From Pocillopora damicornis (lineage: Eukaryota), in the NCBI RefSeq assembly GCF_003704095.1, contig NW_020844647.1, positions 186,001 to 250,000 of the forward strand: DNA of 64,000 nucleotides. Reading direction: 5' to 3'. The translations under genes and the position numbers were made by a program. Of this stretch, positions 1-6,225 are shown piece by piece. Positions within the stretch are counted from its first letter, which is position 1. Every line of letters starts with the position of its first letter. The notes under the pieces were generated by a model. It was not told where the DNA came from and searched no databases. It saw only the letters and a list, made by a program, of their open reading frames with translations.

Positions 1-43
1 GTGGCTCTAAGGACGGCAATACTAAGTAACTTGTTATCAATAC

Positions 44-1119
44 CTCTTGACTTATTTTGCCTCCCAGATGAAATTTTTCGCTGTAAATCACGCTGTAAAT
101 AAGATGTAATTCCTCATCCTCCAGACGAGCCATCTTTCTTTTGTCAAGCTCAGTTTCCTGCAGTATATAGTCCAGATCTGGATCTTTGAAATATTCTTGG
201 TCTAATTTCCCCAGCTCCAGTTCTCCCATATCATAGTGAATCTTGACATTACCCTCCACCATGGCTGTTATGAATCCAATGTCTATCCAGCTAAGTGACA
301 GAAGCAAATGACGTCGTCTTTCGGGCATCATGAATTAATACAGGGGAGATTTTAAGCGATACACCACTCACAGTGTGAGCTGTTGACTTTGGAGTCCCTC
401 AGGTTTGTTTGTGGTTGCGTGGCGATAAATTTATCTGACCCCCGCTAAGGCTCTGTAAAATTCTTATTACCCCCTCCCCCTCACTGGCAGCCAATTGCCA
501 GTCAATTTTTTATAGTCCTCCCTTTATACTCTGTTGTTAGTGACGACTATTCCCCTTTCCGTTCCCCCTGAAAAATTTGTGACCCGCCCTCCAAAATCCT
601 CCACACTCCCCCACCCCCCTCTGGCGATAAATAATGGCTGGTCTCCTTCAGTTCCCCCCTGCTTAGTGAGAGGTTATAAATGGGGAAAGGGAGGTGAGCC
701 ATTGGAGTTCAAATCTTTAAATACATATAAACAGCAAAACTCTGTGGATCATATAAGCAAGTTAAAAAGTATTACCTTTCCAGAGCTAACAGACGATCTT
801 TTAAAGTTCTCTTGCAATCCACTTCATCCTTATTCTCGACTTTTTCACTAATTATCTCTAAGTTATTTTGTAGTCGTTTTCTTGAGTGAATAAGTTCCAA
901 AAAATTTGTCCTTTTTTCCTCCTTTATATAACTCTCTAGTCCTGCAATAGTTATAAATTCCTTTTTGGCAAACAGCTGCTGAGATATCGGCCTCAGCCTC
1001 CGCTTCACCATGAGCACGAATGGTTTTACATCTGAAACAGTGTTTGGACCATGAAGTACGGGATAGTACGTGTAACCAAAATTCAACTTGGCAAATGTTT
1101 TAAGAATCTTCCTAATCAT
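44..1119 (-). CDS. Divergent gasdermin-like (GSDME/PJVK-related) pore-forming N-terminal domain, first two coding exons; gene continues past the left edge
   Basis: Exons 1119-776 (cag|ATG...GAA AG|gt) and 290-44 (tag|C...GAG|gt) splice in phase to give MIRKILKTFAKLNFGYTYYPVLHGPNTVSDVKPFVLMVKRRLRP...SWIDIGFITAMVEGNVKIHYDMGELELGKLDQEYFKDPDLDYILQETELDKRKMARLEDEELHLIYSVIYSEKFHLGGKISQE. By eye this follows GSDME-N motif order (AVSNLNDSDKLQLLSLVTKKK; FGTLRKQEVDLQQL; EVLCVLTQKITT..QVEE). A probable non-coding first exon ends at a GTAAG donor near 2045. Confidence 0.65.
440..660. repeat. Dispersed repeat (ggctctgtaa...cagtcaatttt...tttatactctgtt family)
   Basis: Shares blocks with 8390-8620 in the same order. 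Confidence 0.55.
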
Positions 1120-1289
1120 CTGAAAAAACAACAACATGTATGATAGATGAGAGTCACTCCATACCGAGTCTTGAGATTAAGAGCGGATTAGAAGCTGTTT
1201 TTGATTAAGCCTTTACACCCTAACATCAGTGGTTTGTGGTTTTGCAGCTTGTAAGAAGGCGAGGTAAAGAGAAAGTCTATCTCGTGAGA

Positions 1290-1480
1290 TGTGGCACATC
1301 TAGCCAGAACTTATCCCAATTTCTATAACGTGAAGCAACAAGGAGTATTGTTATTTCCCCTTGATACAAGCTTCCCTGACAATTCATCAGTACCCAGTAC
1401 TCCTAAGTGGAGAAACCCGCCAGGACTCGAACCTAGACCTCTCGACCCGGAGCTCATCACGCCAATCGTTAGGCCACTCA
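1290..1480 (-). mobile_element. Degenerate tRNA-derived SINE
   Basis: The reverse strand carries a B-box-like ggttcgagtcc (plus strand ggactcgaacc, ~1423-1433); the body resembles 31120-31380. Confidence 0.45.
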
Positions 1481-3672
1481 ACTTGTAAACAAGTGACTAT
1501 CTTAATGATGAACATGCAGCCGGTATCGAGATGAGAGCGTTTAAATGAAGCGTGACCAGATTTTAATTTGCAACATGAAACATGACTCAGCTTTAAAATG
1601 CTTCGGAAAATGTTTAAATCCCTCTTTGTTCGTTTAAAGATAAATTAACAATCACAAATTCCTGAAGTTCAATGAATTCGTTTGATTAGAATTCTTCGTT
1701 GTTTTAAATCTAGAGCGCTACCTCAACCTTCTTGTGTTGCCGACAGATATACGTCTCCGAGCTATGTAATTTTAAGATTTTGGTTCCTTGAAAAAATTGC
1801 TTCCCAATTAGTGGGTTCAATGCAAAAATATCACTGTGTCTCACACGACCGCGCAATCAGACTTTAGACCGCGGGAATCGTATCCAAAGAAAAACCAACC
1901 AATGTTTTTATTTCTCAGGAATCTTATCTTCCCTAGCTTCTGAACAATGTTCAAGTTCCGCTTTGTCAAAACTAAAACAATATCCCAACGCTTCAAGAGT
2001 TGCAAGATAATTTTAACCCTCCAAGGATTAAAACATCAACTTACCTCGGTGTTTATTCGGTAACGAAGCTACCGTCAGATGACCTTTGTATGCCGAGGCA
2101 AGAACAACCAAAACTCGCAAGTATTTCTCCAATGTTGGTAGCGTCACGGATCGCAGTATTTACGAGAGTGCTCATGCAAATGCTAATCCTTCTGAAACGG
2201 AATAAATTTGAACAAAACGAGCCACAGAAACAGGGAGAGGATGATTTGGTCATGTATATTAGATATCCAAAGTTATTAAAGTCAAGAATGCACAAATCCG
2301 TGATCGATTTTTTTAATGTTCATTTTTCACTTTGAGGCTTTTATTGTTTTGTTGATATAACTAATACATTTAATTAGTGTTATGGGTTATGAATGATAAA
2401 AACCATGTCGATTCATTTTTAAAATTGATCTCATTTTTGAATCCTTTGAAGCCTTATTTTATTTCATATATATGGATGAGGTTTTAAGTTTGAATTTTCC
2501 GTATAGTTGAAGCTCAGTGTGCGAGCGTTGTCAGCCAGGCAAGCAGAGAAGCGTAGCAACTGTACTTGTTATGGAAATGCGACGATAAATCAAATAGCAC
2601 TTGAGAATGTTTTGATGTTTTTTACTGTTTTGCTGTTTTTCCTTAGTCAGTCAGTTGCTTGATGAATTTTTCTGTTTGAAGTATTAAACTAAAAACCGTA
2701 AAGAAAACAAAAGAAAACTTTAAAACAGAAAAAAAACTGAAAGAGGTGTACACTGTGCATAAAGAGGGGAAGTATTGGCTTGTTAACTGATAACTATGGG
2801 TGTTCGTGATACAGGCCCCCCTCCTTTTAGGTCATCAACATAAAAGTTATAAAATTCAGCAGATGATTCGACAATTCTAGACACTCCACCTGCCGATCTT
2901 TCTCGCCGCGTGAGAACGTGCCCGCTGATTGTTCGCGGGACTTTTTTCGACGTCGTCCCATTGTTATTTTACCTTCATTGTCGAGATCTTTCTGATTAGT
3001 TATTGGCTGGTTGATAAAGGCCACCACACCTTTGAGCCTCTCAGTTCACGAGGTCAGCGACCTGGAACACGAGGCTTTCACCAAGAACATCGATCATCTT
3101 TTTAGCTGAGTATGCGCAGACATTTTGTTATTCGTGGTATGATGTAAAGTACTGCAATACGTGAAGTTAACACAATCGAGAGGAACTAGTTTTGGTTCTC
3201 AATCATAAACAATTTTTTTTAGTGATCCGGCACCCATGATACCGAGATGATAACAATTTCTAACCAGGACTAAAAGATTTTAATGTAAAACAGTAAAAGG
3301 ATCTTGAATTGAATCAACGTATCCCTGTTGAGCATGCGCAATAGCAGGAGAAAGCAATTCCCTTCTCGGAGGCTGTGATACGTTTTGCCAACGTCAATAG
3401 TTCGTGGCAAGAGAGGACATCGTTAAAAAATATATAAATGTAGTGGATGAGCTGCGATCGACACTTTGCGAGCGAGCAAAAATTTTCACTGGTCTGGGAA
3501 GGAATAAGAAAGGATTCACGCCGCTCTCATCCGCCTTCCTCCATTTTCTCTCTCTTGTCCCACTTTTTCACTCGCCCCCACAAATATAGATAAGTGGATG
3601 CAGTTGTACGTGACTTTAGCTTAAGATCAACAGTTTAATATATCTTTACGTGGCTTTTTGTTTTTGCACCAG

Positions 3673-4697
3673 ACAACAAGCGAGCTTATGTTTATGTGCG
3701 CTTTGAGACTGGTGACGAGATATCTCACAGGGCGAAGTTTGCCTTTATTACTTGGATTGGGTCTAAAGTAGACCCTCTTAGGAGGGCTAAAGTCAGCACT
3801 GACAAGCAATTCAAGGAAATTTTTTAAGTCAGTATTTGATTATAGATTTTCTTCTAGAGATTCTTTAAAACCTGATCTTTTCCCCTTGTAACTTTCTTTG
3901 GCTAAGTTCGCTAACGATGGTGTGAGACTAGGTGCAAAGGTTTACGTCACTTGGTTTACTAATTCAAAACAGACTAAGACTAACAGGTTCCTAACTGATG
4001 TCAACAGCTGCCGACACCTTAGGCAGGACTTGTTCACGGCATTTACACGGCAAACGAACCGAGCAGAACAACCGAACATTACCGAAGGATCGCAAATGAT
4101 CGATCAGGACCGACCTAACATAAACGAGTCTTTCAGTCAATAACGTCACTGCAAAACTGACTAATCAGTTTACGCGAACCAGACCTGCAATTCTCTTTGT
4201 CTGTATCTCTTTCACCTTTCTCCTGTCACCATAGGTCTGTATTTCATGGTCTTTATCCGTTTTCTGTTTAAAATTCTAGATCAAGTTGGCTCCCCTTTTT
4301 CCTTGCTTTTAAATTTCCTTTCTTTTAACAATTTATTTTATATTTCTTATCTCTGTTTTGTTTTATTCAGGCATTTTTACCAGTCTTTCTGAGATTTCAC
4401 TGTGTCCTTTTTCTTTGTTTTTGTTTCATTTAAGTCATTTCCTTTATCCTATTCCACTTTATTTACGTTTCTTTTTTTCTTCTTCGTATTCTTTTTTAGC
4501 TATTCGACAAGGAAGTCCTGACGAACGAAAAAAAGGAGTTAGCCAATGACAGGATACTGGGAGTTCTTAAGAAAGCAAGTGGTGCCGCGTACAGTTCAAG
4601 TCATCAACGGCTGGACCTCTACGTACTGCAATGTCCGACTCCACACGGTATCGAGTTGTTGGAGCCACATACACTCAGGCTTATTTCGCTCGCTTAA
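3673..4697 (+). pseudogene. COTL1: Coactosin-like (ADF-H domain) gene fragment with premature stop
   Basis: Exon 3673-3827 reads NKRAYVYVRFETGDEISHRAKFAFITWIGSKVDPLRRAKVSTDKQFKEIF*. Exon 4500-4697 reads LFDKEVLTNEKKELANDRILGVLKKASGAAY.... These match the COTL1 motifs FVRFTTGDAMSKRSKFALITWIGE and NFAKEFVISDRKELEEDFIKSELKKAGGANY. TAA at 3825-3827 sits directly before the GTCAGT donor. N-terminal exons were not found. Confidence 0.8.
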
Positions 4698-6225
4698 CAA
4701 TAAGTTAATTTAATACAAGTCTTAAATGTATTTCAGTGTGTTGGCACCCTTTGGTTGATTCATCAACTTGTCCTTGGAAACAATAACATTGTAAAAACAA
4801 AAGAAAACAACAAGTCATGGGTAAATGTTTTGTTTCTGTTTTGTTATTGTTGTTGAATTTCTTACTACTAACTCGAATTCACTTGGACTAATATGGACCA
4901 ATTTTATTTAAACCATGAACCTACACAATACAGTAGAGACCGAAGATAGTCAGGACTGTGTCACCCATGTAAATGTCACTCAAAAATAAATTTCTCTCCC
5001 GAAGAATTTCGCGAATGGCTGGATGTAACTACTGTCTTGAACGGCGTCAGACTTCAATTTCAGCCAAGAGGAAATAACGGTCCCATTTCAGTTTTCACTT
5101 GTTTCAGCATCTCATATAGAGACAGCGTCTAGTTCAAGGACGAAACTTAAAAAATCCGTCGTCGGTGTCCTCGTTTTCAGACCCGGCGGAGTTTGGTGAT
5201 TTCAGGTTATTGTTCTTCAGAAGACAGCTACGAAATGTACAAAGTTTTAAAACGCACGTTTTCTGTGCCGAGACCGTCGTGGTTTGCTAAGGCCCGTTGT
5301 ATTTCTCCTTCGAGTGTTTAATCCTCATGCCTTTAACCTGATCAATTTGACGTTCTTTAAATTGCGAGATAAATTGGGCTTCGCATCCCTTGTTTTTTTC
5401 TTTTTTTACCTTAACGATTAGTTTGCGCATGGTAGCTACATTATAATTACTTGCGTTGAAACCCCACATTCTCGTTCTGTCACTTGGCTCCAATCCTCAT
5501 GCGACTCGTTTTAAACGGTCAAAAACTCGAAGAATAATGAGAAAACTTGAGGCGACTGCAAAAAGTGACAAAAAAAGTTCGCAAATGGTATAAATTTTTA
5601 ATGACATGTTTCCTCAGTGATAAGTCTGTTCTGCTGAAGGTATTTATTCGCCTTGTACTGTAGCAAGCGAAAATGAGCAACATTCCATTTAGTTTGGTGG
5701 GAGCATTTTATACTATATGGTTTCGGAGAGGGAAAAGACGAAAAAGAAAAGTAAACACCTTGTGAATGATCTGTCTATCACAAACCATGAGAATTTCAGA
5801 AGGGGCATCTTGAAGAAAACTTAAGTGGTTCTTACAACCAGAACAATAGTTTATTTCACGAGGAAGTAAAACCACCCAGAGATGCTGGACTCGCGAAGTC
5901 AAGAAAGCAAACATTATTAGTTTCTTTTCGCAAAATATTTAACTTCCATGGATTCCGAGATTTTGCTATGTTTCTCCTGAACAAATTTTCAAGAATTCAG
6001 GAAATTTGTTCATACAAGAAGTAGGAATTCAGCTGTTTCTACGCCGGATATAGCTTGTGGCCTCTATAACTCGAAGTACGATGTCGACGAGGCGAACACG
6101 ACGATGACATATCTCACTACGTCCTCGCTCCCAGGTCTCTCTATCGTCTCTATGCCTTCGCTCCTTCCGGTGGCTAGGAAGAGAAAATACTCACAGAAAC
6201 GTGTTTATGTCGCTGTTGCTGTTGC

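Follow-up and report, generated by a model that had tools for sequence, protein, structure and literature searches.

Published surveys of gasdermins describe, in the portions on which we rely, one invertebrate lineage, named 'GSDMin', which is cut by caspase-3 in corals and whose members in cnidarians average 54.5% identity (PMC9355259, PMC10948149). With so high a mean identity among its cnidarian members, GSDMin, as far as those portions of the surveys define it, cannot include the family described here. We analysed a gene at the left end of a 64,000-nucleotide stretch of DNA from the stony coral Pocillopora damicornis (NCBI RefSeq assembly GCF_003704095.1, contig NW_020844647.1; hereafter the window, G000:C1282:186001-250000), together with the neighbouring DNA (L010, C1282:178001-187200). 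An earlier reading of the window from its letters alone (the sequence-only reading) had proposed a divergent gasdermin-like gene that becomes visible only after splicing. The locus is a transcribed, spliced P. damicornis gene with one 5' non-coding and three coding exons that encode 303 amino acids (aa). Taken jointly, the explanation that we consider probable is that this spliced gene encodes the fold of the gasdermin pore-forming N-terminal domain (gasdermin-N), that it belongs to a hexacorallian family and that the focal copy is an N-domain-only derivative.

Coding exon 1 lies on the minus strand; it starts with an ATG at 1119 and ends at 776 before the donor AG/GTAATA, leaving the two bases AG of an unfinished codon. 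Exon 2 begins at 290, behind the acceptor CACTTAG/C, and ends at 44, after which comes the donor GAG/GTATTG. The split codon AG+C reads Ser, and the 344 nucleotides (nt) of exon 1 and 247 nt of exon 2 make 197 codons in frame, which bears out the two phase-compatible exons of about 197 aa of the sequence-only reading; the peptide motifs that it quoted are all present in the translations of exons 1 and 2. The remaining two frames of the exon 2 piece are rich in stops. Exon 2 was missing from the window's list of open reading frames (ORFs), as had been pointed out, because its ORF runs off the left end; with the DNA beyond that edge added, it is an ORF of 204 aa. A third coding exon, found by tblastx against paralogous loci, lies behind ...TGTTTACAG and ends at TGA (L010:7361-7041). 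With the exon-2 ORF as query, a word-indexed search of proteins recovered the NCBI model P0002 (303 aa; 'uncharacterized protein LOC113668047 isoform X2 [Pocillopora damicornis]'), which is exactly exon 1, the Ser, exon 2 and exon 3 and uses exactly the junction 290/776. The gene model is therefore already public in RefSeq, but unnamed. Whole-length analyses were run on this database record and exon-wise searches on each exon separately.

Four RNA runs (X1, X3, X9 and X12, from four studies, of 22 runs listed) were compared with L010:3201-9200. The joint L010 8290 to 8776 (window 290/776; CT..AC, that is GT..AG on the minus strand), on which the earlier proposal had been made to depend, is present exactly in X1, X3 and X9 (three of the four runs, from three studies), its shorter side having 247 letters, and contig pieces cover L010 8776-9121, spanning exon 1. 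The joint between exons 2 and 3, L010 7361 to 8044 (skipping 682 letters, CT..AC), was found in the same three runs, where only 28 letters stand on its shorter side. X12, the fourth and random-primed run, yielded unspliced pieces only. Contigs of X1, X3 and X9 extend past L010:9121 (window 1121) by up to 99 loose letters, the first 30 of which match window 2047-2076 exactly and nowhere else; this match and the donor CCGAG/GTAAGT beside it thus identify a 5' non-coding exon. No further exons downstream of exon 3 were seen in the RNA contigs over L010:3201-9200.

The structure of P0002 was predicted with AlphaFold2 from a 133-row family alignment (A2), giving a model with pLDDT 78.4 and pTM 0.70 whose elements include helices at residues 2-14, 67-96 and 103-115 and strands at 35-41 and 53-60. 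In a Foldseek search of the PDB, all 28 listed rows to rank 35 were gasdermins or gasdermin-like proteins, the best being mouse GSDMD (9hjp_A, E 2.1e-4, TM 0.44 by query). An exhaustive VIA-align search of 48,161 representative PDB chains, independent of Foldseek, placed gasdermins at all of ranks 1-12 (Z 14.1 to 5.8), covering residues 1-263. Its top match was the Trichoplax gasdermin pore (8jyw_A, Z 14.1, 181 residues aligned, rmsd 3.8), and the others included the pores of GSDME (12.4), GSDMA3 (12.1) and GSDMD (12.0), GSDMB (11.7), a bacterial gasdermin (11.1) and RCD-1 (5.8). After the gasdermins Z falls to 5.3, and there only the long helix is matched. For P0002 the ESM Atlas has a model of its own, which lies nearest to a cnidarian PF04598 cluster (TM 0.65), then to chordate GSDMC and bacterial GSDM.

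A full-length relative from Oculina, P0015, was modelled with pLDDT 83.6. Foldseek returned 29 matches for it at E<=1e-3, and all 25 listed rows to rank 33 were gasdermins (best GSDME, 1.4e-7); VIA-align again gave the Trichoplax pore 8jyw_A as best match, with Z 15.2. Three full-length gasdermin crystal structures align over both domains of P0015, and its residues 1-389 can be laid on GSDMA3 3-370 over 259 residues (rmsd 8.7). The gasdermin-N fold is recognised by an N-terminal helix on a twisted beta-sheet core and by two extension regions that turn into membrane hairpins, and it is this fold that the predicted models match. The structural similarity that the sequence-only reading had anticipated is thus what AlphaFold2, Foldseek and VIA-align returned at the top for both proteins. 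In gasdermins, a basic helix 1 and a basic/aromatic loop between beta1 and beta2 serve in binding acidic lipids. The relatives carry a K/R-rich VK(Q/R)(R/K)RSIWKRP(F/Y), which HMMER aligns with the loop of GSDME, and the focal copy retains R3, K4, K7, K11 and KRRLRP in a loop without the tryptophan. For the first ~265 residues of the focal protein the gasdermin pore-forming fold is predicted with good confidence, and we hold it very probable that the protein belongs, as a remote member, to the gasdermin fold superfamily.

Each exon matches nine further places in the genome, and the order exon 1-exon 2 recurs at nine paralogous loci. Run over the genome, the family profile matches 43 exon pieces, which are confined to four contigs and include 10 exon-1 copies. 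A HMMER search with P0002 returned 138 representatives at E<=1e-3. Omitted from alignments A2 and A3 were P0003 and P0004 (other models of the focal locus), P0031 (a fusion), P0060 (a tail ORF), P0069 (44 aa) and P0081 (1,592 aa), the last being rejected as a relative for its bacterial adhesin-type repeats. Full-length members have 380-440 aa. The named ones come from the stony corals P. damicornis, P. verrucosa, Stylophora pistillata, Acropora muricata, Montipora capricornis, Oculina patagonica and Desmophyllum pertusum and from Nematostella vectensis, a sea anemone; all are labelled 'uncharacterized' or 'hypothetical'. Judged by these sequence matches, the family is hexacorallian, with 10 copies in the P. 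damicornis genome. Exon 2 is its most conserved part (LGKLDxEY..DPDL..IL...L.LI.SV.YSEKF), and the focal exon 2 retains every family-invariant position; it is 35-51% identical to its in-genome paralogs and 62-80% to relatives in other corals. The closest relatives in other genera, P0010 and P0013, are 54% and 46% identical overall to the focal protein and keep the C-terminal domain (C-domain). In P0031 (852 aa, from unnamed transcript assemblies), HEPN_DZIP3 (8.4e-42) and TRADD-like_N (3e-6), which are domains of immune and death signalling, precede a gasdermin-like module and the C-domain; by its domain order this protein would be a sensor/adaptor-executioner fusion.

In the relatives, the last strand (...KGEF/YVGK...) is followed by a disordered, acidic linker and then by a helical C-domain of ~115 aa, whose exons are present at at least six of the 10 family loci. 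The helical domain of the P0015 model (residues 275-386) is partly superposed on the C-domains of GSDMA3 and GSDMD, with rmsd 8.7-10.6. Linkers in the exon-3 ORFs of paralogs end in SDETD/APG (three copies, in the C1708 cluster) or DQTD/L, the slash marking the candidate cut, and the ORF that follows the pore domain in the canonical P. damicornis gasdermin on C3447 has DETD/AG and DEPD/G in tandem. The focal gene matches the family profile only to position 255. After ...GKFAGNQ the focal protein has 37 family-unrelated residues (VLYFKRPSLVFRELKLPAITLLFIYLSTYLFIVFLHG, then the stop), encoded by AT-rich DNA and ending in a hydrophobic helix (LPAITLLFIYLSTYLFIVFL; predicted helix 284-302). No C-domain exon was found by family profile anywhere on contig C1282. 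Since P0010 and P0013 keep the C-domain, we take its loss from the focal copy to be secondary. The sequence-only reading had looked to the adjacent DNA for a linker caspase site and an autoinhibitory C-domain: both are missing from the focal copy, and candidates for them occur among its paralogs and its relatives in other species.

The N-terminal part of the focal copy has features of its own. Translated, exon 1 gives the N-terminal helix, the basic strand-loop-strand (VKPFVLMVKRRLRP...) and, at the exon's end, where the first membrane hairpin starts, a helical insert of ~18 residues that is peculiar to this copy. The insert falls in the region modelled as helices 67-96 and 103-115 and is not common to relatives. 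The only DxxD of the focal protein, DEVD (98-101), lies within the N-domain, in the loop between these two helices; none of the 16 other rows of alignment A1 has it, nor do the close exon-1 relatives P0028, P0051 and P0073. Placed thus and not conserved, it was rejected as a linker site for activation. The focal copy is not the only N-domain-only form: the copy C1708:916155-916397 has an in-frame stop directly after ...GRSVL, where the N-domain ends, and this stop is matched by the P. verrucosa isoform X2 (P0025, 232 aa). Searches of the C-domain gave little else: the P0015 C-domain alone had no usable match in the ESM Atlas, Pfam GST_C_3 matched weakly in the C-domains of four of 17 A1 members (best E 4e-4, below the cut-off) and in P0031 (residues 745-795), and P0015 matched a PUB domain at Z 6.7. 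The GST_C_3 and PUB-domain matches are probably due to chance.

We are fairly sure that the full-length members have the build of pore formers that a protease releases. In such proteins a caspase-type cut in the linker would free the N-domain, which could then bind acidic lipids through basic helix 1 and the basic/aromatic loop, oligomerise and insert its two beta-hairpins to form a lytic pore. As our best guess, the focal copy is an N-domain-only derivative that would stand outside control by C-domain release. It may stay membrane-active, with its insert and tail holding or targeting it, and may be cut at DEVD by an effector caspase, which would most likely switch it off; alternatively, it may modulate its full-length paralogs. 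A wider picture, tentative and on balance unlikely to hold in all its parts, is that hexacorallians possess a second, ancient and expanded gasdermin lineage comprising caspase-released executioners (DETD/A), sensor-fused forms (HEPN_DZIP3 plus TRADD-N) and N-domain-only, membrane-permeabilising forms under new control, with an insert locking hairpin 1, a DEVD switch and a membrane-targeting tail.

Several observations weigh against this account, and the Pfam and hhalign results and the low identity in structural alignments among them speak for a rival in which the family is unrelated to gasdermins, its beta-rich fold being a convergence or a prediction artefact and its function another one. 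Pfam gave no Gasdermin match for exon 1, exon 2 (E<=10), P0002 or P0010, nor for any of 17 family members, so that the Pfam similarity expected by the sequence-only reading did not materialise. Searched over the genome, PF04598 (cut-off 25 bits) finds a single canonical gasdermin at C3447 (46.1 and 23.2 bits; G000:C3447:188529-190957) and does not reach the focal C1282 locus, and the family profile conversely does not match C3447. By hhalign, the family alignment is not significantly related to exon 1 of the canonical coral gasdermin (Prob 2.6%), to its exon 2 (0.3%) or to a 12-row alignment of exon-2 fragments (0.2%). In phmmer searches of PDB sequences exon 1 matched nothing and exon 2 only kinesin-like and EFHC2 sequences at chance level. 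The structural evidence is drawn wholly from predicted models, in which the hairpin regions (residues 192-236 of P0002) have pLDDT 52-59; the Foldseek TM-scores are modest (0.30-0.44 by query), and identity to solved gasdermins in structural alignments is about 10-17%. Even so, an unrelated family is very improbable in our judgement. Two independent predictors, AlphaFold2 with the family alignment and ESM, agree on the fold; gasdermins take all of the first 12 places among 48,161 chains, cover the whole domain and stand clear of what ranks below; and the family shares with gasdermins a lay-out of two domains with an acidic DxxD linker between them. The best PDB sequence matches of both family profiles are, moreover, gasdermins only, and collinear. 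With profile A1, the best two of four matches are the bacterial gasdermins 8sl0_A (E 0.025) and 7n51_A (E 0.032), profile positions 139-208 running against chain positions 130-200; with A2, all four are GSDME-N, aligned Met1 to Met1 and through the basic-tryptophan loop (E 0.32-0.52). E-values of 0.025 to 0.5 are not significant alone. As no sequence test gave a significant match to known gasdermins, we do not assign the family to the PF04598/GSDME-GSDMin clade and place it only in the fold-level superfamily. The divergent gasdermin-like protein of a separate, poorly annotated lineage that the sequence-only reading had proposed is supported, with the correction that its gene model was in RefSeq already, unnamed.

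The remaining observations against a working focal protein concern the locus itself. No C-domain exon was detected at E<1 within C1282:170001-187200 (17 kb), and no linker caspase site is found in the focal copy; the RNA data are assembled contigs, in which presence and joints are visible and strand, level and ends are not. The missing linker, C-domain and loop tryptophan, a hairpin 1 interrupted by the insert, and the AT-rich, non-coding-looking tail are also what a decaying copy would present. The fold assignment could accordingly be right and the focal copy a transcribed relic, i.e. a paralog truncated by rearrangement beside a zinc-finger gene, drifting and making no working protein, which we think unlikely but take seriously. 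Besides these losses, it would account for the intron-retaining contigs, which are common, and for the ORF P0060 of a close relative, which reads W at the stop and differs at two tail residues. It sits poorly with three open coding exons that are correctly spliced in three studies, with the retention of every family-invariant exon 2 position and with the existence of another N-domain-only form (P0025; copy C1708:916155). Exon 2 is, furthermore, closer to relatives in other corals (62-80%) than to any in-genome paralog (at most 51%), and the focal lineage is therefore old and still conserved. In run X1, the pieces of exons 1 and 2 show 2 differences from the genome in 593 letters and the 3' flank contig shows 32 in 2,348, a hint of constraint and not proof of it. 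Less probable than decay, in our estimate, is a regulatory role, in which the focal copy would co-assemble with or cap the freed N-domains of its full-length paralogs (as a decoy or dominant negative) or would anchor them to a particular membrane via its hydrophobic tail. The conserved core is kept (exons 2 and 3 to profile position 255) while the membrane-insertion elements are altered, a helix tail (284-302) is predicted and nine paralogs coexist with it; the tail, however, looks unconstrained. We retain as the probable explanation a transcribed, N-domain-only derivative of a hexacorallian gasdermin-like family.

The features of the locus are given in Table 1. Some RNA contigs read through the exon-2 donor (window 1-43 and L010:7334-8073), which reflects either retention of intron 2 or splicing at an alternative donor, as in model P0003, where 21 in-frame residues are added. 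Intron 1 holds a dispersed repeat of ~240 bp (about 409-647) with at least 39 further genome matches at 70-80% identity. To the left of the window lies a convergent C2H2 zinc-finger gene with a 256-aa ORF (L010:4993-5763, plus strand; G000:C1282:182993-183763), an intron of which is spliced in run X1 (joint 4666 to 5016, GT..AG). A 2.4-kb RNA contig runs unbroken from this gene to the acceptor of exon 3 in the gasdermin-like gene, and the 3' ends of the two genes therefore abut or overlap. No tRNA was found by ARAGORN in window 1-3000.

Table 1. Features of the gasdermin-like gene and distribution of its family copies (window positions unless a contig is named; a slash marks a splice site or candidate cut)
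Feature	Position	Strand	Details
5' non-coding exon, 3' part	2045..2143	-	Donor CCGAG/GTAAGT after 2045; RNA contigs
Intron, 5' non-coding exon to coding exon 1	1120..2044	-	GTAAGT at 2044-2039, ...TTTTTTCAG ending at 1120
Coding exon 1	776..1119	-	114 codons + 2 bases; P0002 residues 1-114 100% identical
DEVD/C codons (residues 98-102)	814..828	-	Caspase-3/7-type consensus within pore-domain insert; from sequence
Intron 1	291..775	-	GT..AG, 485 nt; RNA joint skips 485 letters in 3 of 4 runs
Coding exon 2	44..290	-	1 base + 82 codons; RNA pieces over L010 8044-8290, 0 differences
Intron 2, start	1..43	-	Donor GAG/GTATTG; extends past the window to G000:C1282:185362
Coding exon 3 (outside the window)	C1282:185041-185361 = L010:7041-7361	-	Stop included; tblastx; P0002 residues 197-303
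Family copies	C1708:917-983 kb (G000:C1708:917000-983200); C3979; C325; C1282		Tandem cluster of 7 on C1708; 1 on C3979; 1 on C325; 1 (focal) on C1282

To date, our search of the literature on gasdermins in corals and cnidarians has found no paper describing this family, although the supplementary sequence lists of the surveys could contain members; nor was a paper found that names LOC113668047 or the identifiers of the Nematostella relative (LOC5501698, A7SZJ7, XP_048577854, XP_001622968, EDO30868). If our reading is correct, the lineage would have been overlooked by published surveys because it is invisible to sequence profiles, and a second lineage, revealed only by comparison of folds, would alter the one-lineage picture of invertebrate gasdermins. 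The cell-death tool-kit of early animals would then be richer than thought, with a family kept from sea anemones to stony corals, and research on coral disease and bleaching would gain new candidate executioners. Variants that are independent of cutting or fused to sensors would serve as natural experiments on gasdermin regulation.

Among known systems, the cnidarian GSDME-type gasdermin GSDMin, represented in P. damicornis by the C3447 gene, resembles the family in its predicted N-domain fold, with an initial helix followed by a basic strand-loop, and resembles the full-length members in its order of N-domain, acidic linker and helical C-domain, with DETD/A in both linkers. It differs in matching PF04598 at 46.1 bits, where none of 17 family members matches and hhalign sees no relation, and in its first intron, which comes after residue 65 in the canonical gene and after about residue 95-114 in the family. 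The family's C-domain has, moreover, only ~115 aa, there are 10 copies against one canonical locus, and the focal copy is without linker and C-domain.

Bacterial gasdermins (bGSDM, PF26164) are the family's best profile matches, have the highest identities in structural alignments (14-17%) and form the nearest named cluster by language-model features (score 0.93). Like the focal copy, they carry a short C-terminal segment instead of a large domain; this tail is inhibitory in bGSDM, from which nothing is implied for the role of the focal tail. They are, however, intron-less bacterial genes that lie beside proteases, whereas the family consists of intron-bearing animal genes.

The Trichoplax gasdermin pore (8jyw_A) is the best structural match of both models (Z 14.1 for P0002 and 15.2 for P0015). 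The Trichoplax gasdermin and the fungal RCD-1, which are N-domain-only proteins activated without cleavage, share with the focal protein the lack of a large C-terminal repressor domain, at about 8-10% identity. Unlike them, the focal copy descends from two-domain ancestors, the C-domain being kept in P0010 and P0013, and is not primitively short.

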